A DNA stretch of 64,000 nt from Obrimoposthia wandeli (GCA_977020255.1 CDROCS010000506.1:186001-250000), one strand, 5' to 3'. Positions 1 through 53,947 are shown, numbered from the stretch's first letter. The notes: a model not told the origin generated them from the letters alone. Made by a program: numbers and translations.

Positions 1-234
1 CTCACAGATCCCAACTCTACATTGTATGGCAATGCTGACAACATGCTTTATCCCAACATAAAAGTGACCCACAAATATAAAGGGTTACAGGCTATGTTTA
101 TCAATCGAATGCACTACCTTCACGATACCCTAGGTTATGATATTTACTTTCCCGAAGATGATCTTGACCGCCCCCCAGCAGAGTTTGTCACGTTACTGCG
201 TCAATTTAAAACACATTGTCCTAGATCAGTGTAA
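1..234 (+). CDS. 3' end of an unidentified protein (runs off window start)
   Basis: Frame open from base 1 to TAA at 232-234; no family motif recognised. Confidence 0.45.
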   Translation, partial: LTDPNSTLYGNADNMLYPNIKVTHKYKGLQAMFINRMHYLHDTLGYDIYFPEDDLDRPPAEFVTLLRQFKTHCPRSV

Positions 235-235
235 A

Positions 236-250
236 TGGTAATAATTATCA
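236..250. promoter_or_regulatory. Fur box (7-1-7)
   Basis: TGGTAAT-A-ATTATCA, one mismatch from TGATAAT-N-ATTATCA, ~90 bp upstream of the 673-aa gene. Confidence 0.75.
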
Positions 251-257
251 ATTAGAC

Positions 258-301
258 TTGCATTAAATATTTTTATATGGATAATACGAACTATTCTCAT
301 T
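258..301 (+). promoter_or_regulatory. Putative sigma70 promoter overlapped by a second Fur-like box
   Basis: TTGCAT (258-263)-N16-GATAAT (280-285); AATACGAACTATTCTCATT (283-301) matches AATGAGAATNATTCTCATT at 15/18. Confidence 0.5.
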
Positions 302-339
302 AAGACATAGTCTATTATAAAAAATAAAAAGGATTTGTT

Positions 340-2361
340 GTGAAAAAGTCTGCCCTTTGCTTTGCCATCTCTTCAGCTTTACTTACTGCTTCATTTGCAT
401 CACATGCTGCAAACGTACAAGTACTTGATAAAACACTTTCTCCTGCTGCAAACTTTCTTGCATATACAGAATTCGAATTATCAGGTGAACCACTTGCTGA
501 ATCTCTTGGTTTAGACCTTGACGTTTTAGACCCTAACCAAGTTGACCAGCCGACTGCATTCGATTATGCCGCTGGTATTGAAAGTTATGAATACTCAGAA
601 GAAGCGATGTATGCGTTAAACTACCAGTCTACGATGGGTCCTCACCTTGTAAATGGTCCAGTAAACCAAGCTCGCGGTGGTTCTCTTGCCGATCTAGGTA
701 AACGTTTCATCTCACTAGCAGGAGCAGTTGGTTTCCCAAGTGAAGAAATTCCATTAAATATGTATCCTATCTCTGTACCATACGTATCAGGTAATCCTGA
801 GTTCGTCGGTAAAGTAGATACAACTAAAGTAAATGGCGAAGAACTAGAAGTATTATCAGCAACAGGTAAAGCAGCAGTTCACAACACCGTAATTCCAGCT
901 TACTTCCGTGACTACAAAACACTCGCATGGGACAGCGCAAGTTTCGATAAAGCCTTAAACCCTGGCGCAATCGGCAGCATCTTCCTTAAAGAAGTCATGT
1001 GGTCACAAGATTTTCTCGGTGGCATGCACGTTACGACGACAGATGAAGAAGTTGAAGCAACATCAAGTACAATGGATCAAGATGGCGTACACAGTCTTGG
1101 TGTATCCGCTGCCGATGGTTTCAACGGTATGATCTTAACTGAAATGTCACTAGATAAGTTACTTATCCTACAACAGCAACTTGGCTTTGACGGTAACAAG
1201 CTAGGCGTTAAATTTGGTCCTGATTATGATGCATCTAAAAAACCTATCTGGTTTGCACATAAAGTCGCTGTTAAAGAAACACAGAAAAACAACGTCAATC
1301 ACATCGGTGAATTATCAGTAACAGATGGTTCTTCGTCATTACGTGATACTTGGATGCTATTGTGGCCAGTAAGTGAATTCTATGCATTTACTGACCAGCG
1401 TACAGCGAACACAGCGCAAAACCCAGCATTCAAAGCTGTGTTTGATGGCAAACCATTTGCTGCAGCACCAAAACAAAATATTGATAACAAGACAAGCAAC
1501 AATGTAATCGCTGACGATGCTTTCTCTGTTGCCAGCAACGTGGCTAACCTGTCGTTCCAAAACTTAGCAAACCTACATTTCAATAAGAAAGCAGGTACGT
1601 TTGTTACTCAATACGACGGCAAGCAAAATGCACAAGTTGAGACATTTGACGCGGCATACAGCATCGTAGCACTATCAATTTACCAACGTTCACAAGATGC
1701 ATTACCAGTAGGTTATGCAGCAGCAGACGGCGGTGATGTAGATTTAGCAACACCTCAAGGTAAACAAGCACTTAGTCTAATCAAAGCCCAAGCAGATTAC
1801 ATCGTTAACACGTTAGTAGCGAAAAATGGTCTCGTATATGACGGCGCCACAATTGGTAAATCAGTAGATAAAAATCAATCACTTGACGCGCAATTCTCTG
1901 CAATTCGTGGCTTAGTTGCTGCTTACCTTGCAACACAAGACGAAAGCTACAAGCAAGCAGCACGTTCAATCTTCCTTGCGGTAGAGAAAAACATGTTTGA
2001 TGCAGAACTAGGTACTTGGGCACAAACGCCAGGTAAAGCAACAATCCACACACCATTAACTGCTGCAGCAATCTCGGGTGGTTTACGTGAAACAATGCTT
2101 CACCTTGCTAACGAAGAAGCCGAGCATGTTCCAGCACTCGAACTACAACACTTAACAGAGCGTTACACTGCTTGGTTCAAGAAAGTAGTAAACGGTGGTC
2201 AACAATTATCAGAATGGGTTGGTGATTCAGGTGAAAACTTACTGAAAGACAACAATACTACCGATTCAGATAATGATGGCGTACACCAAGTAACAGGTGC
2301 AGGTGGTAAATTTGGTACAGCGCAAACGATGGCAGCAAAAGTGTCGGTTAGTGCAAACTAG
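340..2361 (+). CDS. Large secreted acidic protein of unknown function; C-terminal region possibly alpha/alpha-barrel-like
   Basis: 673-aa ORF, GTG start after AAGGA RBS, Sec signal ending ASHA; Asp/Glu-rich; DSDNDG motif; helix segment AIRGLVAAYLATQDESYKQAARSIF recalls six-hairpin/YyaL-type repeats; codon choice looks like a highly expressed gene. Confidence 0.85.
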   Translation: MKKSALCFAISSALLTASFASHAANVQVLDKTLSPAANFLAYTEFELSGEPLAESLGLDLDVLDPNQVDQPTAFDYAAGIESYEYSEEAMYALNYQSTMGPHLVNGPVNQARGGSLADLGKRFISLAGAVGFPSEEIPLNMYPISVPYVSGNPEFVGKVDTTKVNGEELEVLSATGKAAVHNTVIPAYFRDYKTLAWDSASFDKALNPGAIGSIFLKEVMWSQDFLGGMHVTTTDEEVEATSSTMDQDGVHSLGVSAADGFNGMILTEMSLDKLLILQQQLGFDGNKLGVKFGPDYDASKKPIWFAHKVAVKETQKNNVNHIGELSVTDGSSSLRDTWMLLWPVSEFYAFTDQRTANTAQNPAFKAVFDGKPFAAAPKQNIDNKTSNNVIADDAFSVASNVANLSFQNLANLHFNKKAGTFVTQYDGKQNAQVETFDAAYSIVALSIYQRSQDALPVGYAAADGGDVDLATPQGKQALSLIKAQADYIVNTLVAKNGLVYDGATIGKSVDKNQSLDAQFSAIRGLVAAYLATQDESYKQAARSIFLAVEKNMFDAELGTWAQTPGKATIHTPLTAAAISGGLRETMLHLANEEAEHVPALELQHLTERYTAWFKKVVNGGQQLSEWVGDSGENLLKDNNTTDSDNDGVHQVTGAGGKFGTAQTMAAKVSVSAN

Positions 2362-2441
2362 TCTCACCCTTTTGGCAATGAATAGCCATCTCGCAGTACA
2401 CGGTTTAAATTAACATGTGGCTGCGAAATTAACATAAAGTT

Positions 2442-2477
2442 GCAAAAAGGGATGAGATTTTACTCAGCCCTTTTTGC
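2442..2477 (+). terminator. Intrinsic terminator/attenuator inside the cluster
   Basis: GCAAAAAGGGATGAG...CTCAGCCCTTTTTGC hairpin with T tract. Confidence 0.7.
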
Positions 2478-2511
2478 GTTTTCATTACGTCGATATGAAT
2501 AAGGTTTTATC

Positions 2512-2994
2512 ATGTCAATTCAAATAGCTACCTCAACCAGTGATAATGCTTGGTCACGTTTACAAGATCATTTTAAACGTTTAGCCTTTCACCACAAAAA
2601 AGCCGAAGCAATATTATATTTAATGTTCTTATCAGGGCTTTTACTGTGGCCATTTATCAGCATTCCATGGCAAGTAGAACGCACTGTACTGCTCATGCAT
2701 ATGCTTGCTGGTATTAGTATCTTCCCTGCTTTTGTTGGTAGTTTTTGGCTGTCTCATCGAAATCTTATTCAAAAAAGTAACAAGAAATTCTTGCGTCAAA
2801 CTGGCAATGTGATTGAGTACTTACTTGTTACTTGCACTCTGACTGGTGTTTATCTCACTTTTTGGGGAAACACAGGTAATGACTTCAGTATCCTGATGCA
2901 AGATATCCATTTTTACAGCTCATGGTTACTTACCCCGCTTGTTCTTCGCCACGCATGGCGCTGGACTGTCATTAAATTCTTTAGGAAGTCATAA
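2512..2994 (+). CDS. Small multi-pass membrane protein, cytochrome b-like
   Basis: 160 aa, ~4 hydrophobic segments, His pairs in TM helices including H-x13-H (IHFYSSWLLTPLVLRH). Confidence 0.65.
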   Translation: MSIQIATSTSDNAWSRLQDHFKRLAFHHKKAEAILYLMFLSGLLLWPFISIPWQVERTVLLMHMLAGISIFPAFVGSFWLSHRNLIQKSNKKFLRQTGNVIEYLLVTCTLTGVYLTFWGNTGNDFSILMQDIHFYSSWLLTPLVLRHAWRWTVIKFFRKS

Positions 2995-2995
2995 T

Positions 2996-3844
2996 ATGTT
3001 TGCCAGTTTTTTAATTACTTTCCGTGAAGGACTCGAAGCCTTCCTACTTGTAGGCATCATTCTGTCTTACCTCGCCAAGCTTGGTGAATCAAAACACAAC
3101 AAACTTATCTATATTGGAGTGGCGCTGGGTTTAATTGCCTCGTTAATTGTTGCTTTCATTTTCCAGTTTGTAGTCGACCAGTTTGACTCCCATGAATATC
3201 GTAATTTATTAATGGCGGGTATTTTAAGCTTTGCGACTGTCGTCCTTACCTACATGGCAATTTGGATGCAACGCCAGGCTAAAAGCCAAGTAGCAAATAT
3301 GCAGAACAATATCCGTGCAATATTAACCACGGGTAACGTTTTTGGGTTAATCTTTCTGGCCTTCCTAGCTGTGATGCGCGAAGGCTTCGAAACCGTGTTA
3401 TTTTTCTCAGCATTGATGTATTCAGGCCAAGGCGACTTTTCATTACAAGATGGTTTAATTGGCGCAGGCGCCGGTCTTGTTGCATCGCTTGTACTCGTTA
3501 TCGTATTAATGCGTGGTACCCGTAAAGTACCAATCCAAGCATTCTTCAAATGGACTAGCTTGTTAATCATTATTATTGCCGCTGGGCTATTATCTTCAGC
3601 AACCAATATGCTACAGAGCGCCGACGTATTGCCCGTATTCCAAACAGCCGTATTTGATATTAGCCATATCCTTGATGATCAAGGTGTATTTGGCACTTTC
3701 TTACGGGCTTTATTTGGTTATAATTCATCACCAAATCTATTACCACTGCTTGTTTGGATTATTTATTTAGCGGTATTTAGCGTTTTCTGGCAGCGTGGTT
3801 ATCAAACACAGGCCAAACCAACAGCTAATGTAAGTAATACATAG
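2996..3844 (+). CDS. FTR1-family iron permease
   Basis: Two RExxE motifs (FREGLE, MREGFE), ~7 TM; true start ATG 2996 follows AGGAAG RBS and upstream stop (track start 2939 too long). Confidence 0.92.
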   Translation: MFASFLITFREGLEAFLLVGIILSYLAKLGESKHNKLIYIGVALGLIASLIVAFIFQFVVDQFDSHEYRNLLMAGILSFATVVLTYMAIWMQRQAKSQVANMQNNIRAILTTGNVFGLIFLAFLAVMREGFETVLFFSALMYSGQGDFSLQDGLIGAGAGLVASLVLVIVLMRGTRKVPIQAFFKWTSLLIIIIAAGLLSSATNMLQSADVLPVFQTAVFDISHILDDQGVFGTFLRALFGYNSSPNLLPLLVWIIYLAVFSVFWQRGYQTQAKPTANVSNT

Positions 3845-3868
3845 AAGCTAGCTAGCGATCAATATATA

Positions 3869-3970
3869 GAGTGGATAGCATAAACTAAGACAACTGTTGC
3901 AGGCATGGATGCCAGCCCAAGCCCCCATGGATGGGTTTACGGCGCGTTGGCGTGCTTATGTTATCTGCTC
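3869..3970. repeat. ~100-bp palindromic intergenic (MITE/REP-like) element
   Basis: Imperfect terminal inverted repeats GAGTGGATAGCATAA / TTATGTTATCTGCTC, internal GGCATGGATGCC palindrome, GC-richer than flanks. Confidence 0.55.
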
Positions 3971-4055
3971 GAAGGCTGCCAGTAGTTACAAATAATTATT
4001 CGCCGCTTAATAAAACTGTCTATTTGAAAAAAACTAATTTTAAACTGAGTTAATA

Positions 4056-5531
4056 ATGTCGAAAAAAATTGTAATTTTAGGCGCAGGTCCAGCTGGACTG
4101 ATGGCCGCATGGGAATTTAATCAAGCTGGCTATGAAGTCACCATCCTAGAACGTGAAGAGTTTGTTGGCGGTATGTGCGCAACCCAAACATTCCAAGGTG
4201 AAAAAGGCGAATACCGTTTTGATTACGGTGGCCATCGCTTTATTACTAAAAATCCGAAACTATTACAGTTTATCGACGATTTAATGACGGATGATCTGCT
4301 TTATGCTGAACGTACCAGTGTGATCCGTTTTAAAGGCCGTACCTACAACTACCCACTCGCGATTGGTAACCTACTGCGTAATGCGCCGATCAGCTTATTA
4401 GCGGGCGCAGCGGTAGATTTAGTATTTAAACTACCTTTCCAAAAACGCCCAAGTGAACAGAGCACCAGTAACTTTGCCGAATGGATTGAAACGCGCTTTG
4501 GTACCACGTTATACAAAAACTTCTTCGAAGGTTACACCGGTAAGCTTTGGGGCATCGACCCACGTCAACTCTCTGCTGACTGGGCATCACAACGTATAAG
4601 CTTGTTAGATTTAAAAGATGTGGCACGAAGATTAATACCCACGCGCGGCGCAACACCTCGTACCTATGCTAAGAAATACCGTTATCCTAAACTCGGCTTT
4701 GGTCAAATGTATACCAAGCTTGCTGAAAAGTTACAGCTGCAAGGCGTAACCATAGTACAAGGTGCGAATATCAGCGCGTTGCAGCAAGGCCATGATCCAC
4801 GTAAACATAATGAGCTTAATAAGAGCAATAGCATTGATGCCGTGACTTATGAGTTTAACGGTGAAACTCATACGATTAGCTGTGATCATGTTGTCGGCAC
4901 AATTCCATTACCTGTGGTTTGTACATTAACAGGGTTCGATTCAGGTCTAACTTATCGTTCACTGCGCTTTTTCAACATGCCAATGGCAACAGAAAATGTG
5001 TCACAGAATACCTGGCAGTACCTGTCCGACCCAGAATTAATCGGCACTCGTTTGCAAGAACCTCGTCGCCGTTCACCCTTCATGGCCCCCGAAGGACAAA
5101 CATCTGTGATGATTGAGATCCCTTGTGACAAAGGTGATGATGTTTGGAACATGGACAACGACAAACTATTAAAACGAGTAAAAGAAGACCTTGATCATTT
5201 AGACGTACCCGATGTCAGTACCGGTGAATACTTTACCACTTACACGGAATACGCTTATCCGATGATGGACGTGCGCTATAACGCCAAACGTGAAGCCGCG
5301 ATTAAACACCTTAACCAATTTGATAATTTGGTCATGACTGGTCGCCAAGGTACTTTCCGTTATATTTTTACTGATACAGCAATGGAAATGGGCTTAATGG
5401 CTGCAGAAGGTATTATTAAAGGTGAAGATAATCGCCGTCAGATCTTTGATCACCGTAACGAAAAAACAGTCATTGAAGTGCAAAGCATTATGGATGATAA
5501 AAAAACACCAGAGGGTAAAAATGTCACTTAA
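4056..5531 (+). CDS. FAD-dependent oxidoreductase, UDP-galactopyranose mutase/HemY-like superfamily
   Basis: GAGPAG dinucleotide fold, DYGGHRF, YAYPM, GRQGTFRY motifs; 491 aa. Confidence 0.8.
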   Translation: MSKKIVILGAGPAGLMAAWEFNQAGYEVTILEREEFVGGMCATQTFQGEKGEYRFDYGGHRFITKNPKLLQFIDDLMTDDLLYAERTSVIRFKGRTYNYPLAIGNLLRNAPISLLAGAAVDLVFKLPFQKRPSEQSTSNFAEWIETRFGTTLYKNFFEGYTGKLWGIDPRQLSADWASQRISLLDLKDVARRLIPTRGATPRTYAKKYRYPKLGFGQMYTKLAEKLQLQGVTIVQGANISALQQGHDPRKHNELNKSNSIDAVTYEFNGETHTISCDHVVGTIPLPVVCTLTGFDSGLTYRSLRFFNMPMATENVSQNTWQYLSDPELIGTRLQEPRRRSPFMAPEGQTSVMIEIPCDKGDDVWNMDNDKLLKRVKEDLDHLDVPDVSTGEYFTTYTEYAYPMMDVRYNAKREAAIKHLNQFDNLVMTGRQGTFRYIFTDTAMEMGLMAAEGIIKGEDNRRQIFDHRNEKTVIEVQSIMDDKKTPEGKNVT

Positions 5532-6159
5532 AGCGACTAATACAACGTTTGTGAAAACAAGCGTAATAAACACCAGCATGATGAAATCATTTATCCTAAG
5601 CTTTTTTGTCTTGCTATTTAGCACACAAAGTTTTGCTTATTCTTATGCTGCAGCAGGTAAAGAACCGTTAATTGAAGGACGAGAAGTGCTATTAAAAGCA
5701 TTATCAACGGATGATTATACCGCTGTACAAGCTGCCTATAATACCATGCAAGCTGAGTTCGTTTACTTCAATGAACACCATGGTTTAAATCTTGATGAAC
5801 AGATGGAAAAAGCCATCTCAAATAAAGACCAGCAAGGTGTAACGGGGGCACTCGTCACCACGATGAAAGCCGAAGTAATGCGCCGCCTTGAAGGTGCAGA
5901 GCAAAACATTAACGATTACCAAGTCGCTAAAGTGTTAGTGGTCAAAAGTAAGTTATTTATTGATTTACTGGCTGCTGATTTGACGGCTGATAATCGCCAG
6001 AAAGCAGATGTAGCGATCCGTGGGGCGCTCGCCTCTATCGGTAACCCAGGGGTATTTGGTGTTGGTCAAAAACCTGCCGATTTAACACGCTTTATTGCCT
6101 TCCGTACTGACTTACAAACGGCACTGCAATTTACATTACCCGATGCACCAACGAAGTAG
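5521..6159 (+). CDS. Secreted all-helical protein of unknown function
   Basis: ATG 5521 after GAGGG RBS overlaps upstream stop (alternative start 5578); signal-like FILSFFVLLFSTQSFA; amphipathic helices. Confidence 0.75.
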   Translation: MSLKATNTTFVKTSVINTSMMKSFILSFFVLLFSTQSFAYSYAAAGKEPLIEGREVLLKALSTDDYTAVQAAYNTMQAEFVYFNEHHGLNLDEQMEKAISNKDQQGVTGALVTTMKAEVMRRLEGAEQNINDYQVAKVLVVKSKLFIDLLAADLTADNRQKADVAIRGALASIGNPGVFGVGQKPADLTRFIAFRTDLQTALQFTLPDAPTK

Positions 6160-7576
6160 TAAGCCTTGCTACGCTGATTTAATTATCGGTATTAGCGTAA
6201 TAGCCTGCATTGCAGGCTATTTTGGCTTACTCAATTATTACAGTTTTGATATTAGCAGTGATGATGCACTGTACTTTCAGCGTGCATTAACTTATTTTTC
6301 GGTATTAGAGTTCAGCCCTCACTTTCCTGGATATCCTGGCTTTGTATGGTTAGAACGCCTTGTCTATGCAATCAGTCAACACCCGAACAGTAATGTATTA
6401 GTCAGTTACTTTTCTGCCATAGCATTAACCTTAAGCGTTTTTGCCTATTGTTATCAGCGCATGCATACCAAGTCATTTGCATTAGTCGCTGTACTGTTGT
6501 TTTTAGTGCAGGGCAATATCGCCGAATTAGCCTTTAACGGTTTGTCTGATGCTTCAGCATTGTGGTTTTTTAGCTTATATTTATTATGCACGCGCTTTGA
6601 TCCACCACCGTTACAAAGACCGACATTCACAGCTACATTTACCACAACATGCACAGCGATTATCAGCGGCTTATTATTGGCGGCATGTTTAGCAACGCGG
6701 CCGTCTTATTTACCTTTAGTTAGCAGCGCGATGCTATTGGCACTCTGTTACCAAGATAAAATCCAATCAAGCTATAAACAACTTGGTTGGCAGATAATCA
6801 GTATTACTGTTATTGGATTTATTTGCGCACTCTATGTGTTTATGCAAGACGGCTGGGCTTATTTTGAAGAAGGTCAACGCTTTACCCAAGGCCATTTTGC
6901 TATTTGGGGCAATACCACAAGGTCCACTGACTCATTACTCAGCCAGTGGCTGACAACATTAACCAATACCTATTCCACTTTCGGGCTGATATTATTAACC
7001 TCAATCCTCGTCATTGGTTTATATATCACCAAAACCCGTGGACTCAGTATTCTAGCCTGTTGCTGGTTAGCTTGGATAATTCGTGGACAAAACCCAGAGA
7101 ACATTCGTCATTTAGCTGTATTGGGCTTATTGCTGCCAATAATCAGCGGGCAGCTACTTGAATATTTTTATCATACCCAGCGCCTTCGCCCCGTCCTTAT
7201 TTTATTCATAGGGGGGTTATTAATAACCTTAAGTAGTCACAGTCTCAAGCAATTTACCGCACAAAAAAATGCACCCGTATTACAAGCGAGTCAGTTCTTA
7301 AATACCATAGAAAAACAACAAATCATCATCAGTAATTATAATATTGATAACCTGCGTAATAATCTGCCCCAGCATGTCGTGTTAGACCGTCATTATCAAA
7401 ACAGCAGTAATTACCAAGCCCAACAGCAAGACTACTGGCGTCTAAGCAGTAATAAGCTAGACTCGAATCCACTGGATAATGAACATTTAGTGGCTCAATT
7501 TAAAGGTCGTTTTCTTGGTGAGCGCAGTTTATACCTCTATTACTTTGATCCTAATCATTTAAGCTCGCAAACATAA
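6143..7576 (+). CDS. Polytopic membrane protein, GT-C/PMT-like glycosyltransferase candidate
   Basis: N-terminal TM followed by acidic loop SSDDALYF...SPHFPGYP, then ~10 TM and a soluble C-terminal tail; start uncertain (6095 TTG or 6143 ATG). Confidence 0.6.
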   Translation: MHQRSSKPCYADLIIGISVIACIAGYFGLLNYYSFDISSDDALYFQRALTYFSVLEFSPHFPGYPGFVWLERLVYAISQHPNSNVLVSYFSAIALTLSVFAYCYQRMHTKSFALVAVLLFLVQGNIAELAFNGLSDASALWFFSLYLLCTRFDPPPLQRPTFTATFTTTCTAIISGLLLAACLATRPSYLPLVSSAMLLALCYQDKIQSSYKQLGWQIISITVIGFICALYVFMQDGWAYFEEGQRFTQGHFAIWGNTTRSTDSLLSQWLTTLTNTYSTFGLILLTSILVIGLYITKTRGLSILACCWLAWIIRGQNPENIRHLAVLGLLLPIISGQLLEYFYHTQRLRPVLILFIGGLLITLSSHSLKQFTAQKNAPVLQASQFLNTIEKQQIIISNYNIDNLRNNLPQHVVLDRHYQNSSNYQAQQQDYWRLSSNKLDSNPLDNEHLVAQFKGRFLGERSLYLYYFDPNHLSSQT

Positions 7577-7585
7577 CTGCAATTA

Positions 7586-7629
7586 TTGCACTATCGCGCC
7601 AAAACTATATAATGATAACCATTCTTAAT
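7586..7629 (+). promoter_or_regulatory. sigma70 promoter with overlapping Fur box for the cytochrome gene
   Basis: TTGCAC (7586-7591)-N16-TATAAT (7608-7613); AATGATAACCATTCTTAAT at 7611-7629. Confidence 0.65.
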
Positions 7630-7667
7630 CGCAATACCACTCACCCCTGTCAAGATGCTGTAAATCT

Positions 7668-10649
7668 ATGAATATAAAAATGTTGCCTAAATTAATGTTT
7701 ACTTTACTGCTGCTAGTAAGCCAGTCACTTTATGCCAGCACTGTTAATGCCAATGCGGCTGATAGCAATATTGCTCATGCTAAAAGTACTTATGCAAATA
7801 CCAAAAGTAACAGCTTATTACTATCAACTGATAAAACTCAGTTTATTAGTGCAAATATGGATGCAGGCAGTGTCAGTATTCTTGATGCTGAAAGTGGTCA
7901 ATTATTAGCAGAACAAGCATTAGGTAAAGATTTACGCCGTCTGGCACTAGATCCGATTAACAACCAATTATTAGTCAGTGATTATCTGGCAGATCAACTG
8001 TATCTGATTGATGCAAAAACGCTAAAGTTAATTAAAACCATTAAAACAGGTTACCGTCCTTTTGGTATTGTTTATGACGAATATAATAGGCAGTATTACG
8101 TCACTTTATTCGAAGCCAAACAACTATTAACTGTATCGACAGAGGGTGAGATCACAGCAACAACGCCAACAGCAGAGACGCCGCGTGGACTCGCTCTGGC
8201 AGCCGATGGGCGTTTATTTATCACCCACAGCATGACAGGTCAGGTATCAATTTATGATACACGTTCTGCCACGCTGCAATTAAATAAGATAATTCAACTT
8301 GTCGATACGCCAGCGCATGCGTCTCGCGCGGTACCACAAGGTAAACCACGTGTACTCGATAATATTGCGATATCACCCGATGGTACGCAAGCTTGGTTAC
8401 CGCATGTATTGTGGTCATTTTCACAAAATTTTCAATTTCAATCGACAGTCTTCCCCACTATTTCATTACTTGACCTTACACCAGGTAAAGAAAAAGAAAT
8501 GGTTGATAAGCGTAAGCAATTATTTAAGCAAATAAACATTATCGAGAATAACAACACCACACGTATTGTCTCAAATCCACATGATGTTTCATTTCGTGAA
8601 GACGGTAAAAAAGTCTTTATTAGCTTATCTGGATCTGAGGACTTGCTGGTATTCGATTTATCTCGCCAAGCTAAAATAGGTAAAAAGTCTAAACGCCATC
8701 GTCGAACCAAGTTACAAGGCGGCGTGAAAGCCACGCAAATATATCGTCATATTCCAGGCAGTAATCCACGTAGCCTAATTGAAAAAGACGGCACCCTTTA
8801 TGTGCAAAATGCCATGTCGCACGACTTAGTCAGCTTTGATGTCAGTGGCAAAGGGCCTTTTGCTAAAGTTAAACTCGCTAATGCGCAGTTCGCCAAACTG
8901 ATTAATCAAGATCCAATCGCGCCAGAATTACGTTTAGGTAAAACCCTGTTCAATCTTGCCAACAGTGAAAAATTTGAAAACAGCGCCATGGCGGGTGATT
9001 TCTGGATGAGCTGTAATTCTTGTCACCTTGACGGTTTCAATTTTACCAACAAATACCTATTAGCTGACGGCACCAAAGACATTAGCCAAAATGCAATGAC
9101 AGGTCACATTGGATTAGCCAGCATGATTGCTGGCGATCCGATCGAAGCTTATATCGATATGATCCAAAAGACCCAAGGTGGTATGGGCACAGATCCGAAA
9201 AAACCTGAGTTACCAAAAGTCGATCCAAAATCACCATCTGTAGAGATCGTCCGTTTAATGTCAGCATTAAACATGTACGTCACGACCAAAGAGAATTTAC
9301 CTTACCTATCAACTTGGTTACGTTTTGATGACGAGCGCAAGTTCACGCACAAGTCAGAATGGTTAAACTCAGCCAGTTGTGAATCATGCCACAGTACCCT
9401 TTATAAGCAGTGGTCGAACTCAAACCATGGTATGCACATGGATAGCCCTTATTATCGCTTCCAAGAAAACTTAGCGGCTGAATCAGAAGGCGAACCCTTT
9501 AGAAATTTATGCCGTGGTTGTCATGCCCCGCAAACGATATTAAATAACAATACAGCGCCGTTGACTCACCTTAATAGCATGTATGAGAAAGAAGGCCAAA
9601 GCCTACGCGATGCATTAAAACAAGGCTTACCAGTCGACGAAACTGGCACCAGTTGTGTATTCTGTCACCGTATAACCAAAGCTGAAGATGCGGGTGGTAA
9701 TACCGATCTTACCGTTAACTTAAAAGACCGAGCAGAATACCTGTTCGAATTTTCGAGTAACCCGGCATTAAAACTCATTGCCGAAGCACAAATAAATGCA
9801 TCTCCACAGCAGCATAAAGACAGCTATTCAAACCCAGCGCTGTATAAAAGTTCGTTATATTGTGCGACTTGTCATAATGAGTTCACTCCAGGTCAAGGTG
9901 CTAATGTAAATAACAACTATGGCGAATGGCAGGCATCTAAATTTAACGCGCCTGACAACCCAGAACAAAACAAAACCTGTATCGATTGTCACATGCGCTC
10001 TGACATGACTGATTTCGATAACGATGTACCGGGACAGGCAACGGATAACGGGCCTATTAAGCCGAACCTCATTGCCCATAACTTTATTGGCGGTAACTAT
10101 TATTTCTCTGATATGCGTTCGAAAGAACACGGTAAACTTAGCCGTGATATCTTACGTAATGCCCTACTACTTGACGTTGAAAGTAGCGAAGATGGCCGTC
10201 ATATAAACGTGAAAGTAACCAACCATAATACCGGCCATAAAATGCCCGGTGGCGCACGTCGTCAAGTATGGGTTGATCTGGTTGTTACCGACAGTCAAGG
10301 TGTCGAGCGTTTAGTCAGTGGCCAATTGAATGATGGTTATTTACCGAAAGACAGCCGTGTATTTGCGAAGAAAAGCGGCTATATGCATGGCGAACCTGTA
10401 GGACTTAAGTTCTGGCGTGTAGAAAAGATTCTAGCAGATACCCGTATATCACCCGATGAAACGCGTATTGAGACGTTTGCTCTACCAGAAAAACTAAGCT
10501 ATCCAATCACCGTAGTTGCTAAAATTAACTACCGCTCTTTCTCAAAACCGTTAACAAGTAAAGTTCAAGCTGCCTTCCCTGAGCAAAACATTCCTTTTGC
10601 CGATGTGATCGAGCTAAACAAAGTCACTAAAGTGTTCCAACAACACTAA
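7668..10649 (+). CDS. Secreted beta-propeller / multiheme cytochrome c fusion (6 CxxCH)
   Basis: Signal peptide; YVTN-like repeats; CNSCH, CESCH, CRGCH, CVFCH, CATCH, CIDCH; C-terminal region resembles c554/c552-type multiheme domain (GHKMPGG). Confidence 0.88.
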   Translation: MNIKMLPKLMFTLLLLVSQSLYASTVNANAADSNIAHAKSTYANTKSNSLLLSTDKTQFISANMDAGSVSILDAESGQLLAEQALGKDLRRLALDPINNQLLVSDYLADQLYLIDAKTLKLIKTIKTGYRPFGIVYDEYNRQYYVTLFEAKQLLTVSTEGEITATTPTAETPRGLALAADGRLFITHSMTGQVSIYDTRSATLQLNKIIQLVDTPAHASRAVPQGKPRVLDNIAISPDGTQAWLPHVLWSFSQNFQFQSTVFPTISLLDLTPGKEKEMVDKRKQLFKQINIIENNNTTRIVSNPHDVSFREDGKKVFISLSGSEDLLVFDLSRQAKIGKKSKRHRRTKLQGGVKATQIYRHIPGSNPRSLIEKDGTLYVQNAMSHDLVSFDVSGKGPFAKVKLANAQFAKLINQDPIAPELRLGKTLFNLANSEKFENSAMAGDFWMSCNSCHLDGFNFTNKYLLADGTKDISQNAMTGHIGLASMIAGDPIEAYIDMIQKTQGGMGTDPKKPELPKVDPKSPSVEIVRLMSALNMYVTTKENLPYLSTWLRFDDERKFTHKSEWLNSASCESCHSTLYKQWSNSNHGMHMDSPYYRFQENLAAESEGEPFRNLCRGCHAPQTILNNNTAPLTHLNSMYEKEGQSLRDALKQGLPVDETGTSCVFCHRITKAEDAGGNTDLTVNLKDRAEYLFEFSSNPALKLIAEAQINASPQQHKDSYSNPALYKSSLYCATCHNEFTPGQGANVNNNYGEWQASKFNAPDNPEQNKTCIDCHMRSDMTDFDNDVPGQATDNGPIKPNLIAHNFIGGNYYFSDMRSKEHGKLSRDILRNALLLDVESSEDGRHINVKVTNHNTGHKMPGGARRQVWVDLVVTDSQGVERLVSGQLNDGYLPKDSRVFAKKSGYMHGEPVGLKFWRVEKILADTRISPDETRIETFALPEKLSYPITVVAKINYRSFSKPLTSKVQAAFPEQNIPFADVIELNKVTKVFQQH

Positions 10650-10651
10650 TT

Positions 10652-10712
10652 GATTGGCTAGCTGAATACTGGAATAGATAATGTGTCTATTGTGATATTC
10701 AGCTAGTCTATC
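10652..10712 (+). terminator. Long hairpin ending the cluster
   Basis: GGCTAGCTGAATA...TATTCAGCTAGTC with inner AATAGA/TCTATT stem; no clear U tract. Confidence 0.5.
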
Positions 10713-10960
10713 GATAAAATGATCCATACAAACTATCAATAAAAACCGTCAATAAAATTAGATCAAAAAACTCGAGATGTTTGGTCATAAACAATAATCC
10801 TATTCTTGGCTGGTACTATTTCAGACAGACATTATTGTAGATAAAGTACTACGACAGTACTCACCAAAAGTAATGGCAAGTTACTTATATTCATTAAATA
10901 ATTCGCCTTTTCGCTAATCCGGCATAAGCTATAGATAACTTTGTTAATAAAGCACCCTTT

Positions 10961-11596
10961 ATGCATGCATATATAGCTAAACAACCGATTTTAAACAGCG
11001 CTCGCCAAATTGTGGCTTATGAGCTGTTATATCGTGATAGTTTAGATAATACCTTCCCAATGATTAATGCTGAGCTCGCCACCGCGCGCTTAGTTGACGA
11101 GCACTTGTTGAATTCTAATATCAACAAGCTTGTGGACAACAAACCCTACTTCATTAATTTCACCGAGAAGAGCATACTGACTGGCTTACCACTAAAACTG
11201 CTCAACAAACCCATCGTCATTGAAGTATTGGAAGATGTCCCACCAACGCAAGCGATATTTAATGCGTTAACAAAGTTGAAAAGTATGGGGTTTACCATCG
11301 CATTGGATGATTTTATTTATTCTGAAGACTGGCTGCCATTTTTTAGCATTGTCGATATTATCAAATTTGATATTACCCTCACCTCTTTTAAAGAGATAAA
11401 AGCACTAAAGCCATTATTAGACAAACATGAGGTAAGTATATTAGTCGAGAAAATTGAAACGGAGGGGCAATTTACCCAAGCTAAAAACCTGCAAAGTGAA
11501 TATTTTCAAGGTTACTTATTCTCTGAACCAGAGATAGTATTGAATGAAATTAATACGCCGGAGACACAAACAACGCAGATGACAAGCGCACCATAA
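10961..11596 (+). CDS. Stand-alone EAL domain protein (YuxH-type EAL lacking HDOD)
   Basis: IAKQPI, YELLYR, IEVLE, ALDDF, KFD, EKIE, FQGYLF motifs. Confidence 0.85.
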   Translation: MHAYIAKQPILNSARQIVAYELLYRDSLDNTFPMINAELATARLVDEHLLNSNINKLVDNKPYFINFTEKSILTGLPLKLLNKPIVIEVLEDVPPTQAIFNALTKLKSMGFTIALDDFIYSEDWLPFFSIVDIIKFDITLTSFKEIKALKPLLDKHEVSILVEKIETEGQFTQAKNLQSEYFQGYLFSEPEIVLNEINTPETQTTQMTSAP

Positions 11597-11650
11597 TACG
11601 CCCATCACCAGCACATTTAATCGAATCAGAAAAATAACGCAACGATGAGA

Positions 11651-12232
11651 CTAAGCGCTCGCGTTACCATTCATGAAATGCTTACGACACAAGGATACAT
11701 AGCGTTCATTACCGCCGATTTCAACTTGTTCGCCTTCTCGCAATACCACACCACTGTCACTCACTCGAGCATTCATGTGCGCTTTATTGCCACACCAGCA
11801 AACCGTTTTCAGCTCTTCAACTTTATCTGCTAGACACATTAAGTGATACGAACCTTCAAACATCTCTAATTTAAAGTCCGTTTTTAATCCATAGACAATG
11901 ACCGGGATATTTAATTGGTCCACGACATTCGCGAGTTGATAAACCTGCTCGCGAGAGAGGAATTGCCCTTCATCAATGATAAACACATCGATTTTTTTCT
12001 CTTCTGAACGTCTCGAAACAGTGGTAAATAAGTTGGTATCTTTTTCAAATACTTCGACTTCTAGTTTTAAACCAACACGTGCACCAATAACCCCCTTGCC
12101 ATAACGACTATCACACTCAGGTGTCATCGCTAGTGGGTACATACCACGTTCAATATAATTAAAGTGAGCTTGGATTAATTGTGTTGATTTACCTGAATTC
12201 ATAGCTGCAAACTTGAAATGCAAAGATGCCAT
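11651..12232 (-). CDS. tdk: Thymidine kinase
   Basis: AAMNSGKST P-loop, IDEGQF, YGLKTDF, CWCG, YVSLCRKH. Confidence 0.96.
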   Translation of the reverse strand: MASLHFKFAAMNSGKSTQLIQAHFNYIERGMYPLAMTPECDSRYGKGVIGARVGLKLEVEVFEKDTNLFTTVSRRSEEKKIDVFIIDEGQFLSREQVYQLANVVDQLNIPVIVYGLKTDFKLEMFEGSYHLMCLADKVEELKTVCWCGNKAHMNARVSDSGVVLREGEQVEIGGNERYVSLCRKHFMNGNASA

Positions 12233-12243
12233 TTTATACCCTC

Positions 12244-12270
12244 AAAAAAAACGCCTGTATCAACAGGCGT
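12244..12270 (-). terminator. Intrinsic terminator after NhaC-family gene
   Basis: ACGCCTGT/ACAGGCGT stem with 8-U tract on minus strand. Confidence 0.7.
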
Positions 12271-12334
12271 ATATTATTACTTAACCATCAAATTCAAGGC
12301 TGCTTGTTACAAACAGTCTGTTTTTAATGTCTTA

Positions 12335-13930
12335 TTATACTTTACGACTTAATCGAGCCATAATAGCAACCACAACAGTAAATGCAATTGCAGAAGCGAT
12401 AAACCCAGATAGTACAGAGCTTGTAATACCAAGTACCAAGTAACCAATAGCACTTACTAACGCAATTGATAACGCATAAGGTAACTGAGTCATTACGTGG
12501 TCCATATGGTGGCAGTTAGCCCCTGTAGACGATAAGATCGTGGTATCAGAGATAGGTGAACAATGATCACCAAATACCGAACCCGCTAACACTGATGCTA
12601 ACATAGGTAACATTAAGGTTATTTCTGTACCTGCAGCCATATCACCTGCGATTGGTAACATGATACCAAATGTACCCCAGCTCGTACCTGTTGCAAACGC
12701 CATAAAGCCAGCGAGTACAAACACGATAACCGGTAATAAGCTCGTCGGGATTGAATCGCCCACTAACGCAGCAAGGTATTTACCAGTCTCGATAGAACCA
12801 ATCGTTGAACCAATTGCCCATGCGAAGAATAAGATATAAACCGCAGGTAACATTGATTTAGCACCGTGGAAACTTGCTTGTGCTAACAATGATACCGACA
12901 CACCAGAAATAAGGCTTAATACCAAGGCGACAGCCAGACCAGATAATGCACCGTATACCAATGAGCTACCTACATCTGTATTCTCAAACGCACCTAGAAT
13001 ATCGAAGGCTTTACCATCAGCAGCCAGTGACGAAGCACCAGAGTTAATCATAAAGAAGATAGTTGCAAAGATAAGTACAAGAATAGGTAAGATAAGGCCA
13101 GAAATGTGACCACCTTCAGCTTCTTTTAATTCAACGGTAGCGCCTGCTGGTTGGCCTTTTTTATCATCAAATAACTTGCCTTCTTTCGCTGCAGCTTCTT
13201 CTTTCGCCATTAAACCGAAATCAAGGTTTAACAAGACAACAGCAAACACCATTGCGATAGCGAAGATAGCGTAGAAGTTCATCGGGATCATTTGCATGAA
13301 TGCAGAAAGTGGACTGATATCCGTAATGGCATGGCTTGCTAAAATACCACCGATAACGGCAATAATATAAGCACCCCAGCTTGAAATCGGCATTAATACA
13401 CACATAGGTGCAGCTGTCGAATCCAGTAAGTAAGCTAGTTTAGCACGCGATACGTTGTAGCGGTCTGTCAATGGACGGCTTACACTACCGACTGCTAGAC
13501 TATTAAAGTAATCATCTACAAAGATGAAAATACCTAAAAATGCCGTCAATAATGTACTACCACGACGTGTTTTAATTCGTGTTTTAGCCCAGTCAGCAAA
13601 CGCACTTGTTGCGCCACTTACCATCATAACGCTCGTTAACATACCAAGTATGAACAAGAATACGATGATTGATAGATTCCAAGTGTTGAATGAACCCACT
13701 TCCCAGAACGAGCCCTTGCTCGCATCACCTGATTCCCAAACTAAGCTTAGCGCTAAGTCTGCAAGGTGTTTAGCCGCGTTAACAACATTAAAATCTGTTA
13801 AAAATAGTGCGCCAAGTAAAATACCACAACCAAGTGATAACAATACTTTACGCGTTAAAATTGCTAATGTAAGTGCAACTAATGGTACAACCAGCGATAA
13901 TGCTGAGTCTGAGTAATTAATGAGTTCCAT
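12335..13930 (-). CDS. Na+/H+ antiporter NhaC-family protein, predicted lysine transporter (LysW-type)
   Basis: FVDDYFN, LDSTAAP, ATGTSWGTF, GDHCSPISDTT motifs; lies under a lysine riboswitch. Confidence 0.88.
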   Translation of the reverse strand: MELINYSDSALSLVVPLVALTLAILTRKVLLSLGCGILLGALFLTDFNVVNAAKHLADLALSLVWESGDASKGSFWEVGSFNTWNLSIIVFLFILGMLTSVMMVSGATSAFADWAKTRIKTRRGSTLLTAFLGIFIFVDDYFNSLAVGSVSRPLTDRYNVSRAKLAYLLDSTAAPMCVLMPISSWGAYIIAVIGGILASHAITDISPLSAFMQMIPMNFYAIFAIAMVFAVVLLNLDFGLMAKEEAAAKEGKLFDDKKGQPAGATVELKEAEGGHISGLILPILVLIFATIFFMINSGASSLAADGKAFDILGAFENTDVGSSLVYGALSGLAVALVLSLISGVSVSLLAQASFHGAKSMLPAVYILFFAWAIGSTIGSIETGKYLAALVGDSIPTSLLPVIVFVLAGFMAFATGTSWGTFGIMLPIAGDMAAGTEITLMLPMLASVLAGSVFGDHCSPISDTTILSSTGANCHHMDHVMTQLPYALSIALVSAIGYLVLGITSSVLSGFIASAIAFTVVVAIMARLSRKV

Positions 13931-14042
13931 GATCCCTTTGACCTAATAAGTTTTATAGGAAGCGACTGAACAAGACAGATGAGATATGGCATAAGGCTAT
14001 TTACAAATGATGTATGTAAAGATAACACTTACAACTCTTCTA

Positions 14043-14225
14043 TTTCAGTAGCGCCCCATAGTTAATTTAAAATTGACTATGACAGTGATGTATCTATTCG
14101 AACACATCCCCAGAATGAATACTTTAAGCTGTTAGCATCCGTTCTTCGGCGCAATTCCCTTTCGTATTATTGTCATTGGAGCTACCTAAACAATACTAGT
14201 AATGAGTTGCGCACCTCTACTTAGG
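14043..14225 (-). ncRNA. Lysine riboswitch
   Basis: Minus strand AGTAGAGGTGCG...GAAAGGG...GCCGAA...CTGGG...CGAATA...ACTGTC...GGGGCGCTACT with P1 AGTAG/CTACT. Confidence 0.92.
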
Positions 14226-14642
14226 AGGAAGCCAGATAATAGCAGATAATTTCACCACATCAAGAAATAGTCAGTGTTAATGTTCATAAAACAAACAGCA
14301 AGTGACATTAAAATCTAGCTCAATCATCAGATTATTTTTCGACATAAAGTATATCGACTTCAAATAATAGACCATTAAATAGTTTAAAAAACAATGTTCA
14401 CACTATAGTTGAATTATATTCATTTACTCATCGAATTAATCCCTAATGAGTTCAATTTAATAAATAAATGTAAATACGTTTCTTATATTTATTTAGCTAT
14501 AGTATATTCATTACATTAGAGTATATTATTTACATTATATTTTTCGTATTAAATAGATTCATTACACTAGGTACTTCTTTGTATTAGTGTATTAATCTTA
14601 TTTCGCGTTTACTCGTCCCCTGTCTATATTTAGGTATTAATT

Positions 14643-16683: not shown

Positions 16684-17262
16684 ATGCTAATTCAACATCG
16701 GTGGTTAAACTGGTTTTTTATCGGACTATTATGCCTCGTTATATATGTGGTTTCAGCCGACAATATAACCGTGTTTGATTATAACAGGGAATTAATTATC
16801 AATGGCGAATATTGGCGTTTGATCAGTGGTAATTTTAATCATACTAATATCTATCACCTACTGCTAAATTTAAGCGCTTTAGCGGTCATGGCAGGCTTAC
16901 ACTATCGCTATTATAGCAGCGCGGCTTACGTTAGTTTAATTTTATGCTTATCTATTGGCGTTGGTATTGGCATATTATGGTTATCACCAAGTACGCATTT
17001 ATATGTGGGCTTATCAGGCGTGCTACATGGCATTATTATTGTAGGGGCGATATTAGATATAACGAAGCGCTATTACTCCGGTTATCTATTAATTATTGGA
17101 ACGATTATCAAAGTGATCCACGAGCAATTATTTGATAGCCCAATAGCAATGAGTCAACTGATCGACGCCAAAGTACTCACTGAAGCACACCTTTATGGCC
17201 TTGTGACTGGATTTGTTATTGCCCCCGCCTTTGTATATCTAAATAAAAAAAAGAGCGCCTGA
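16684..17262 (+). CDS. Rhombosortase
   Basis: WRLISGNFNH, YVGLSGVLHG (catalytic Ser), AHLYG (catalytic His). Confidence 0.88.
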   Translation: MLIQHRWLNWFFIGLLCLVIYVVSADNITVFDYNRELIINGEYWRLISGNFNHTNIYHLLLNLSALAVMAGLHYRYYSSAAYVSLILCLSIGVGIGILWLSPSTHLYVGLSGVLHGIIIVGAILDITKRYYSGYLLIIGTIIKVIHEQLFDSPIAMSQLIDAKVLTEAHLYGLVTGFVIAPAFVYLNKKKSA

Positions 17263-17271
17263 GCGCTCTTA
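17244..17271. terminator. Bidirectional terminator between rhombosortase and pyrF
   Basis: AAAAAGAGCGC-CTGA-GCGCTCTT. Confidence 0.6.
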
Positions 17272-17300
17272 TAGATATTAACGTTAATGTTAGACAGCTA

Positions 17301-18002: not shown

Positions 18003-18096
18003 ATCTCTTCCTAGGTCCGGTTAATCATTATCGTATTCTTGTTATATTATCTATCGCGATTATCTATCGTTAATAGACATGGATTATGAGGTCTCG

Positions 18097-53809: not shown

Positions 53810-53947
53810 ATTATCCTTAAAAAATAAATAACCGAATCAATGGCTAATGAATCATTGAGGAATCACTGCTAAATTGTTAAAGCAATTATATAATCTAAGT
53901 AACTGGCTATTGCGCTTTCAAAAAAACTTGTTACTATTGCCGCCTAT

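Follow-up and report, generated by a model that had tools for sequence, protein, structure and literature searches.

What does a Fur-controlled gene cluster do if it carries an iron permease of the FTR1 family and none of the proteins with which such permeases are known to work? The question is raised by seven co-oriented genes, here called g1 to g7, in a 64-kb stretch of DNA deposited under Obrimoposthia wandeli (GCA_977020255.1 CDROCS010000506.1:186001-250000), which was analysed at its full length and is referred to below as the window. Judged from its g1, which is 98% identical to that of Moritella dasanensis, the window is Moritella genome sequence. We propose that the cluster is a widespread, uncharacterised, Fur-regulated and FTR1-associated system of redox-coupled iron uptake that lacks the defining partners of the known systems. 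Redox-coupled iron acquisition outside the cytoplasm, with electrons running in either direction, is its likely function, because Fur control extends across phyla, the genes are linked to FTR1 or Feo transporters, g1 neighbours siderophore genes in Aeromonas, g2 is fused to g7 and g1-type domains to cytochrome c, and g1 appears to be made in excess. More tentatively, we favour the reductive direction, in which a quinol-driven periplasmic ferric reductase would feed FTR1 or Feo.

The genes occupy positions 340-10649 of the plus strand, with the starts of the open reading frames (ORFs) corrected against homologues. In order, they encode a secreted barrel protein (g1), a cytochrome b-like membrane protein (g2), the FTR1 permease (g3), a flavoprotein (g4), a small secreted helical protein (g5), a membrane protein resembling GT-C glycosyltransferases (g6) and a multihaem cytochrome c (g7). 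The preliminary description of the window had listed seven co-oriented genes, several with abutting or overlapping ends, and all seven were recovered; g2 (stop at 2994) abuts g3 (start at 2996), and the start of g6 overlaps the end of g5. Its assignments of g2, g3, g4, g6 and g7 to families were reproduced by profile, structure and motif analysis. The g3 product matches FTR1 (PF03239) with an E-value of 1.4e-45 over profile positions 1-271 of 284 and has REXXE motifs at residues 10 (REGLE) and 128 (REGFE); its score against the NCBIfam EfeU model is 206 bits, below the cut-off of 255. Profile scans also agree with the observation that known FTR1 partners are not recognisable. EfeO (cupredoxin/M75), DyP-type EfeB and multicopper oxidase had no Pfam or NCBIfam match in the seven proteins, and neither the cluster nor its immediate flanks yielded a match to a P19-type/FetP protein, a cupredoxin or a polyferredoxin. 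The flanking genes (for a DUF2982 protein, a two-component system, an EAL protein, thymidine kinase and a member of the Na+/H+-antiporter family) are unrelated to iron, and Psychromonas CNPT3 has all seven genes elsewhere on its chromosome, between eno and ftsB-ispDF; the seven genes thus form a self-contained unit.

Predicted control by Fur is one line of evidence for a role in iron metabolism. Every 19-mer of the window was scored against the Fur consensus GATAATGATAATCATTATC, so that the sites reported are consensus matches, and only two of them in the 64 kb reach 15 of 19 positions, namely boxes 1 and 3 in the promoter regions of g1 and g7. Box 2 is a weaker match, and Moritella, Endozoicomonas, Oleiphilus and Aeromonas loci share an equivalent at about -61 to -75. 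Among 80 genome loci compared, most have a Fur-like site 40-150 nt before g1, which is often the best site of the 22-kb locus; GC-rich Aeromonas has the site CATAATGCACACCATTCTC at about -74. A Fur-like box is likewise the top match of an Aeromonas locus without g1, where it precedes g2, and Fur-like boxes precede g1 in two Bacillota. The preliminary description had placed Fur boxes on both sides of the cluster. The boxes stood, shifted by a few bases, but the third, of which all 5 Moritella loci have an identical copy and other loci have none, is part of a Moritella-specific internal promoter and does not bracket the genes. Outside Moritella, the gap between g6 and g7 is usually 6-60 nt, which implies a single operon there.

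For the organism of the window, a search for sequencing runs gave two metatranscriptomes with 5% of the words and one probable DNA run, none of them usable as RNA evidence. Published proteomic data on Aeromonas bear directly on g1. ORF01830 of A. hydrophila LP-2, a homologue of AHA_2481 of 2001 bp annotated as 'FIG00919923 hypothetical protein', rises about 10-fold in the extracellular proteome upon treatment with dipyridyl (93 peptides) and is undetectable by western blot in iron-replete cells, and its deletion raises the median lethal dose in zebrafish 3.6-fold (PMC6387970). Sequence comparison verified ORF01830 as a g1 orthologue. The reverse complement of the reverse primer used for quantitative PCR in that paper has an exact match within the g1 homologue at eight Aeromonas loci, and both primers translate to invariant motifs of the g1 family, GLDLDV and YEYSEEA; the forward primer has no exact match in the compared loci because A. 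hydrophila is not among them. The extracellular fraction that contained ORF01830 also held the periplasmic proteins FecB, ModA, MalE and TolB (PMC6387970), so that the presence of g1 there is compatible with a periplasmic as well as with a secreted protein. The arrangement of the genes suggests that g1 is made in excess, as a hairpin with a T-run lies 3' of g1 in nearly all loci, conserved in position and unrelated in sequence, which is the usual design where a first soluble product is to exceed the membrane components that follow.

The Aeromonas genomes also show that the genes belong together when they are not adjacent. In A. caviae KAM479, g1 lies at 2.95 Mb beside biosynthesis genes for a catecholate (amonabactin-type) siderophore, and the other six genes, with a second GT-C-like gene, are found 80 kb from g1, each locus having its own Fur-like box. 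A class of Aeromonas loci without g1 is 97% identical in DNA to this strain. The notion that g1 stands alone in Aeromonas was accordingly rejected at the genome level, and all seven genes co-occur even when unlinked. The additional GT-C-like membrane protein (PTPS_related, PF10131) is encoded right after g6 in two A. caviae loci (L130, positions 17281-19029, and L171). As a separate matter, the PLSDB entry NZ_AP026896.1, labelled plasmid pKAM479_3, is 4.94 Mb long, carries chromosomal genes and is almost unannotated; it is evidently the mislabelled A. caviae chromosome. In a fur mutant of Aliivibrio salmonicida, an imelysin/DHOR pair is up-regulated, and VSAL_II0931-0937, annotated as a membrane protein (fragment), an exported, a hypothetical and a membrane protein, rise 4-6-fold (PMC5511505). 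These genes may be a decayed copy of the cluster. The A. salmonicida Fur-regulon papers list no FTR1.

A degenerate-pattern scan found relatives of g1 in 234 species-level genomes, and the 80 loci mentioned above were kept and searched with all seven proteins by tblastn. The window's order, g1 through g7, is found at 23 loci (Moritella, Photobacterium, Vibrio, Aliivibrio, Ferrimonas, Endozoicomonas and others). Fifteen loci, among them Colwellia, Pseudoalteromonas, Litoribacillus and Neptunomonas, have g1-g2-g7 only. The order g1-g2-g7-g4-g5-g6 occurs at 8 loci (Motiliproteus, Amphritea, Terasakiella) and g1-g2-g7-g3-g4-g5-g6 at 5, with one more truncated (Pokkaliibacter, Pseudovibrio, Thalassospiraceae). 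One Motiliproteus locus has g1-g4-g5-g6, and g1 is alone at 26 loci, 25 of which are from Aeromonas. A reciprocal scan of metagenomes with g7 added further permutations, such as g3-g4-g5-g6-g1 followed by a g2-g7 fusion, and a large class without g1 (g2-g7-g3-g4-g5-g6) that is Aeromonas. Five gene orders recur over Gamma- and Alphaproteobacteria and metagenomes, with more than 100 loci in all. An 8-kb insert between g1 and g2 in one locus (L045) was rejected as part of the cluster; it is an unrelated operon on the opposite strand.

Could the cluster nevertheless be a chance juxtaposition of two or three unrelated operons? The Moritella spacers (150 nt after g1, 211 nt after g3 and 91 nt after g6), of which those after g1 and g3 are the widest, and the separate g7 promoter would fit such an origin. 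We consider it extremely improbable, given that the same genes are found together at all these loci in several orders, are tightly packed outside Moritella, move jointly to other chromosomal sites (as in Psychromonas) and are all present even when split in Aeromonas. The expectation that the genes would co-occur in other genomes was thus borne out in many genera and across phyla, with Fur-like boxes almost everywhere.

What varies between loci is as informative as what is shared. About 20 of 49 informative loci with g2-g7 (about 40%) have no linked FTR1. In the genome set, FTR1 occurs only together with the g4-g5-g6 block, and it always directly abuts g2 or g7. On one metagenome contig of 36% GC (L154, positions 16856-19263), feoA overlaps the end of g6, feoB overlaps feoA and g2 is fused to g7; feoA-feoB is translationally coupled to the cluster there. 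The two Bacillota, one with the genes on an Anoxybacillus amylolyticus megaplasmid, have a two-gene unit that is devoid of g2, the five-haem part and FTR1. It consists of a g1 homologue (43% identity) and a lipoprotein of 651-654 aa that aligns to g7 residues 9-579 (35% identity, E 1e-94) and comprises the propeller and a dihaem domain. By comparison of sequences, then, the invariant core of the system is g1 plus a propeller protein with a haem domain like that of cytochrome c peroxidases (CCPs); FTR1 and g4-g5-g6 are accessory, and in Proteobacteria the haem protein is extended by a five-haem wire and joined to the membrane through g2. The preliminary description had proposed a new type of FTR1 system. 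Its genes do co-occur and the known partners are missing, but FTR1 does not define the system; since the permease is often unlinked and the Bacillota core is free of it, a more fitting description is that of a system for redox mobilisation of iron into which FTR1 is often recruited. In Anoxybacillus (L168, pDSM15939_1, 258 kb), positions 9007-13979 hold genes for a DUF2325 protein, a hypothetical protein of 170 aa, the g1 homologue and the propeller-dihaem CCP-like lipoprotein; the unit has three Fur-like sites and adjoins the men operon. The gene of 170 aa that precedes g1 there corresponds to neither g2 nor g5.

The redox chemistry of the cluster would be performed by g2 and g7. A path of haem b and haem c had been suggested for the cluster, and it is strongly indicated by four conserved histidines in g2, the g2-g7 fusions and six invariant CxxCH motifs in g7. 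The g2 product has four transmembrane helices, with H63 and H82 on the second and H133 and H147 on the fourth; among 19 homologues, H63, H82 and H147 never vary and H133 hardly does. This placement predicts one bis-histidine haem b site near each membrane face. Six of the 19 homologues match DUF4405 weakly (best E 1.4e-4) and one matches Ni_hydr_CYTB, a family of prokaryotic cytochrome b561 (1.9e-4); the g2 of the window matches neither. A single ORF of about 1120-1136 aa combines g2 and g7 in Pseudovibrio, Terasakiella and Thalassospiraceae and in two metagenome lineages of low GC (hhalign probability 98-99% in the low-GC lineages). The topology of the fusion is consistent, with both ends of g2 in the cytoplasm and the g7 signal sequence serving as a fifth helix.

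Calling g7 a six-haem cytochrome c, as the preliminary description did, was correct as to the six CxxCH motifs but understated the protein, whose first 410 residues form a seven-bladed beta-propeller. A CCP-like first haem domain, a five-haem part resembling cytochromes c552 and c554 and a C-terminal beta domain follow (mean predicted local distance difference test score (pLDDT) of the model, 74.6). The six motifs, invariant in 25 homologues, account for all 12 cysteines, and a signal peptide is present. The propeller is closest to that of hydrazine synthase beta (TM-score 0.75 by target) and also resembles those of NirN and cd1 enzymes, and the haem part matches the pentahaem cytochrome c552 5ze8 and also resembles NrfA/MccA-type and ExtKL multihaem proteins. 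Against CCP_MauG the haem-1 region scores 17.2 bits, the gathering cut-off being 25.6; the Anoxybacillus orthologue lies above the cut-offs for both CCP_MauG (30.9 bits) and the RoxA-like family (35.1 bits) and matches DHOR weakly.

These resemblances, to a peroxidase in the first haem domain, to hydrazine synthase, NirN and cd1 enzymes in the propeller and to c552, NrfA/MccA-type and ExtKL multihaem proteins in the remainder, would also suit a quinol peroxidase or a respiratory or extracellular-electron-transfer module that acts not on iron but on H2O2, on a compound of nitrogen or sulphur, or on a different metal (Mn or Pb, for example), and that came under Fur for indirect reasons. We regard this as quite improbable. 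The module is linked repeatedly to FTR1 and FeoAB, Fur boxes precede it across phyla, and no genes for an outer-membrane porin or a terminal reductase lie alongside. Moreover, other cytochromes of Aeromonas, MtrF and c4, fall sharply under iron starvation (PMC6387970); haem proteins that are instead derepressed through Fur would be expected to pay back in iron, and the eight-haem complex stands out in this respect.

The g1 product has a Sec signal peptide, and the mature protein has a pI of 4.7 and no cysteine. It belongs to no Pfam family, and the 'DUF4856' label that some of its database entries carry was not reproduced by Pfam; no paper mentioning that domain was found. Sequences are 59-98% identical across Gamma- and Alphaproteobacteria (59-72% between the two classes), and the family is small, with 293 clusters at 50% identity among 1.84 billion representatives. 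Its conserved residues include E44, E81, Y83, Y85, H230, Y296, D336, D369 and H413. The AlphaFold model (pLDDT 93.6) is an (alpha/alpha)6 barrel with large beta-rich additions that matches GH105/YteR, AGE-type epimerases/isomerases, GH76 and GH88 with Z-scores of 18-21 over about 300-340 residues, roughly half the protein. Nothing structurally closer than these carbohydrate-enzyme barrels was found, and a sequence-profile search of the PDB with g1 gave no match; g1 has the fold of the six-hairpin glycosidase/AGE superfamily and no family-level sequence match to it. Distant relatives carry C-terminal monohaem cytochrome c domains or tails for the type IX secretion system (T9SS), and AlphaFold-DB fold clusters with the g1 architecture are named C-type cytochrome. 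The contexts of two such relatives, a cytochrome c fusion (P0296) and a T9SS-tailed Bacteroidota form (P0260), are short and uninformative, and a 152-aa gene after the Bacteroidota form was rejected as g2 for want of homology. A g1 paralogue of 64% identity and with no Fur-like box lies between genes for a sodium:solute symporter and a GH13 alpha-amylase-like protein in Oceanospirillales bacterium XeTr1 (L027, positions 9950-12007), which has the full cluster elsewhere in its genome (L006). Such a context suggests that the g1 fold may have an ancestry, or a side function, related to carbohydrates. Within the cluster, we infer that g1 is likely the component that captures or presents the iron substrate.

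Carbohydrates come up again in the g4-g5-g6 block. The g4 product scores 577 bits against NF005547 (PRK07208.1-3) and exceeds the thresholds for Pfam Amino_oxidase and GLF (the latter with 37 bits vs 26). Its nearest solved relatives are UDP-galactopyranose mutases (UGMs), the closest being 4dsg, but it scores 66 bits against the UGM equivalog TIGR00031, with its cut-off of 304, and is therefore UGM-like and not a UGM. The g5 protein has 281 homologues, was inside such a cluster at every locus examined, and has a nearly invariant mature N-terminus, Y-[ST]-Y-[AS]-A-[AK]-G-[KR]-E-P, with Ser or Thr at position 2; its look-alikes in the Atlas are helical. The g6 protein is grouped with ArnT/PMT_2/RgtA-like Atlas clusters at a feature score of 0.99 (structural TM-score to the nearest cluster, 0.78-0.91), and 14 homologues all keep the aspartate pair (D40, D41) of its first periplasmic loop; further motifs are invariant too. 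A direct Pfam match is lacking for g6, so that its membership in GT-C holds at the level of the fold. A GT-C protein with its acidic motif, a UGM-like flavoenzyme and the conserved Ser/Thr of g5 together suggest a periplasmic glycosyl transfer, on the strength of folds and of the GT-C motif; the cluster contains no synthase for a lipid-sugar donor.

It is conceivable, then, that the cluster is an envelope or glycan system induced by iron starvation, in which g1, g4 and g6 make, modify or degrade an acidic polysaccharide or a lipopolysaccharide moiety that possibly chelates iron, the cytochrome module and FTR1 being only loosely associated with it. Besides the fold of g1, with Z-scores of about 20 to carbohydrate-active (alpha/alpha)6 enzymes, the GLF domain of g4 and the acidic loop motif of g6, this explanation would account for the extra GT-C-like gene of Aeromonas and for the g1 paralogue that lacks a Fur box and sits beside a solute symporter and a GH13-like gene. 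It is nonetheless improbable. At the 15 proteobacterial loci without g4-g6 and in Bacillota, g1 is paired with the propeller cytochrome all the same, and the fusion of g1-type domains to cytochrome c would be needless for a pure glycan enzyme. Nor does any sequence family match tie g1 to a glycosidase, and the missing donor synthase also speaks against it.

How might the parts work together in iron acquisition? The scheme that we favour is a Fur-repressed, siderophore-independent system built on extracytoplasmic redox chemistry, in which iron as the substrate, the direction of the electrons, the roles of g1 and g5 and the glycosylation step are all inferred. Upon iron starvation, a large excess of soluble g1 would be made, which may bind an Fe(III) source or release iron from it. 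Electrons would leave the membrane or cytoplasmic side through g2, with its putative bis-histidine haem b near each face, and pass along haems 6 to 2 of g7 to the CCP-like haem 1 beside the propeller, where Fe(III) held by g1 or by the propeller would be reduced to Fe(II). The Fe(II) would be imported by the linked FTR1 (g3) or, where none is linked, by Feo or another ferrous importer. The g4-g5-g6 genes would form an accessory unit that travels with FTR1, in which the GT-C transferase g6, aided by the UGM-like g4, most likely modifies g5 or works with it.

Outward flow is favoured for four reasons. The four-histidine design of g2 is that of outward carriers (MsrQ, PepSY_TM/FoxB, DUF4405 and Fre-type proteins), and the membrane potential would assist electrons in that direction. 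In CCP-type enzymes, electrons flow to the active-site haem, which in g7 is haem 1. FTR1 is often unlinked, and a reductase can supply whichever importer of Fe(II) is at hand, among them the feoAB of the metagenome contig described above. Finally, most hosts live where iron is Fe(III) on organic ligands.

The opposite direction, in which g7 is the ferroxidase arm of an FTR1 transporter, has to be weighed against this scheme. Fe(II) would be oxidised at the CCP-like haem, electrons would run through the haem wire and g2 to the quinone pool, or to H2O2 in the wire-less Bacillota form, and g1 or g5 would hand Fe(III) to FTR1, in parallel with Fet3/Ftr1, EfeB/EfeO/EfeU and FtrB/FtrD/FtrC. Every known FTR1 system has an oxidant partner (PMC9174327), g3 directly abuts g2 or g7 in every arrangement that contains it, g7 has a conserved core of the CCP/MauG/DHOR kind, the Bacillota pair would be self-sufficient without a membrane wire only as a peroxidase, and iron-regulated EfeO/EfeB and imelysin/DHOR pairs provide a precedent. 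Even so, we judge this direction unlikely, as some 40% of the g2-g7 loci have no linked FTR1, inward electrons through a transmembrane dihaem b would oppose the membrane potential (known relatives of g2 carry them outward), the coupling to feoAB fits a supply of Fe(II), and most hosts live in oxic marine habitats, where Fe(II) is scarce.

Several further points weigh against a reductive iron-acquisition system. The iron binding, reduction or transport ascribed to these proteins is deduced from sequence and model, and the Fur boxes of this organism are sites predicted from consensus matches. All characterised FTR1 systems depend on an oxidase (PMC9174327), and in each of them import is coupled to the oxidation of Fe(II) rather than the reduction of Fe(III). 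For the Bacillota form, without g2 and the five-haem wire, an electron source must be assumed. Eight haems per complex would be costly under iron starvation. The predicted fold of g1 is of a carbohydrate-enzyme type with no known redox or metal role, and a g1 that is truly secreted, as its presence in the extracellular fraction of Aeromonas might indicate, would be separated from periplasmic g7, although that observation is not decisive. In the boldest reading, the pair of g1 and the propeller cytochrome could be the core of a hitherto unrecognised class of iron-acquisition system that reaches from Bacillota to Proteobacteria, in which the abundant barrel protein captures Fe(III) of the environment or unlocks it, possibly from saccharide or uronate, and a wire of dihaem b and six haems c reduces it, with a glycosylation-dependent accessory module of its own. 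Such a class would mirror, in bacteria and with unrelated parts, the reductive iron assimilation of eukaryotes; we put it forward as speculative and somewhat unlikely.

Comparison with known systems shows partial likeness in each case. The proposed mode of action is nearest to yeast reductive iron assimilation and to the periplasmic ferric reduction of FoxB, and the make-up is nearest to the iron-regulated EfeO/EfeB and imelysin/DHOR pairs. EfeUOB of E. coli and B. subtilis is also iron-regulated, and there, too, a permease of the FTR1 family is joined by a soluble protein outside the cytoplasm and by a peroxidase-type haem protein; here, however, EfeO and a DyP-type EfeB are absent, g3 falls below the EfeU cut-off, and the haem protein has six c-type haems, is fused to a propeller and would be wired to a cytochrome b in the membrane. 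FtrABCD of Bordetella, Brucella and Burkholderia shares an FTR1 permease, a periplasmic redox protein and a proposed transmembrane electron carrier, whereas our cluster has no P19 (FtrA), cupredoxin (FtrB) or polyferredoxin (FtrD), uses haems b and c instead of copper or Fe-S, and includes g1 and g4-g6, which have no counterpart there. The closest working analogy is yeast Fre1 with Fet3/Ftr1, where a transmembrane dihaem-b reductase sends electrons out to Fe(III) ahead of FTR1. Fre1, however, is a single protein of the NOX type that includes an FAD/NADPH domain and is not homologous to g2 or g7, the reductase of our cluster is only proposed, and the cluster encodes no multicopper oxidase. FoxB reduces ferric siderophores. 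Like FoxB/PepSY_TM, MsrQ and DUF4405 proteins, g2 is a small four-histidine membrane protein that would bind haem b and pass electrons to the periplasm; it differs in having four transmembrane helices with only sub-threshold DUF4405 matches among its homologues, and in serving, sometimes in fusion, a multihaem c partner rather than a flavinylated or molybdo-protein. DUF4405 proteins have been shown to bind haem b and were proposed to be transmembrane electron carriers (PMC11334425). The Fur-regulated pairing of a soluble non-haem protein with a CCP-like dihaem protein recalls imelysin (IrpA) and DHOR/DUF1111, except that g1 has a barrel in place of the imelysin fold and g7 has a propeller and a five-haem extension. 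Finally, g7 resembles dihaem CCPs and quinol peroxidases in having a CCP-like first haem domain fed by further c-haems, but its CCP_MauG score of 17 bits misses the cut-off of 25.6, and it is joined to a propeller and occurs in an iron-uptake context; a peroxidase activity is putative.

The preliminary description knew of no account of this gene combination, and none was found in the searched full-text literature, outside which most subscription journals lie; only the Aeromonas g1 orthologue appears there, under no name and as a hypothetical protein. Both in the ocean and inside hosts, bacterial growth is limited by iron, and the non-siderophore routes to it are few (Feo, EfeUOB, FtrABCD, P19 and FetMP). 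Four of the seven cluster proteins have no family annotation. Many Gamma- and Alphaproteobacteria of the sea carry the system, among them Moritella, Photobacterium, Vibrio, Aliivibrio, Psychromonas, Colwellia, Pseudoalteromonas and Motiliproteus; every Aeromonas locus examined has it too, and Bacillota have a reduced form. A quinol-driven ferric reductase, if that is what the cluster encodes, would explain a siderophore-free use of organically bound Fe(III). It would also assign a role to a protein that is abundant in iron-starved A. hydrophila, a pathogen of fish, and that was tried earlier as a vaccine antigen. Since Aeromonas is genetically tractable and a g1 deletion mutant exists, the question is directly testable.

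Table 1. Positions of the cluster genes, their predicted regulatory elements and neighbouring features in the 64-kb window.
Feature	Position	Strand	Description
Sigma-70-like promoter	216-245	+	TTGTCC, 18-nt spacer, AATAAT; before g1; -10 overlaps Fur box 1
Fur box 1	231-249	+	15/19 to GATAATGATAATCATTATC
Fur box 2	280-298	+	13/19; box conserved across genera
g1	340-2361	+	Secreted (alpha/alpha)6-barrel protein, 673 aa
Stem-loop and T-run	2442-2483	+	After g1; -20.6 kcal/mol; attenuator or partial terminator
g2	2512-2994	+	4-TM (transmembrane) dihaem cytochrome b-like protein, 160 aa
g3	2996-3844	+	FTR1/EfeU-type iron permease; corrected start 2996
g4	4056-5531	+	Cytoplasmic FAD (flavin adenine dinucleotide) protein, UGM/amine-oxidase-like
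g5	5578-6159	+	Small secreted helical protein, no known family, 193 aa
g6	6143-7576 (alternative start 6095)	+	GT-C-type membrane glycosyltransferase-like protein
Fur box 3 and overlapping TATAAT	7608-7626	+	15/19; internal promoter for g7
g7	7668-10649	+	Periplasmic beta-propeller and six-haem cytochrome c, 993 aa
g8	10961-11596	+	EAL protein, 211 aa
NhaC-like gene	12335-13930	-	Na+/H+-antiporter family
Lysine riboswitch	14041-14227	-	117 bits
TPP (thiamine pyrophosphate) riboswitch	53943-54042	+	81.5 bits

The gene downstream of g7, g8, encodes a stand-alone EAL protein that matches positions 61-236 only of the EAL profile. It was rejected as a member of the cluster; an EAL gene adjoins the cluster in Moritella only. 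Further along, a lysine riboswitch lies directly upstream of the NhaC-like gene, which is probably a lysine-controlled transporter, and a TPP riboswitch is found in the distal part of the window.

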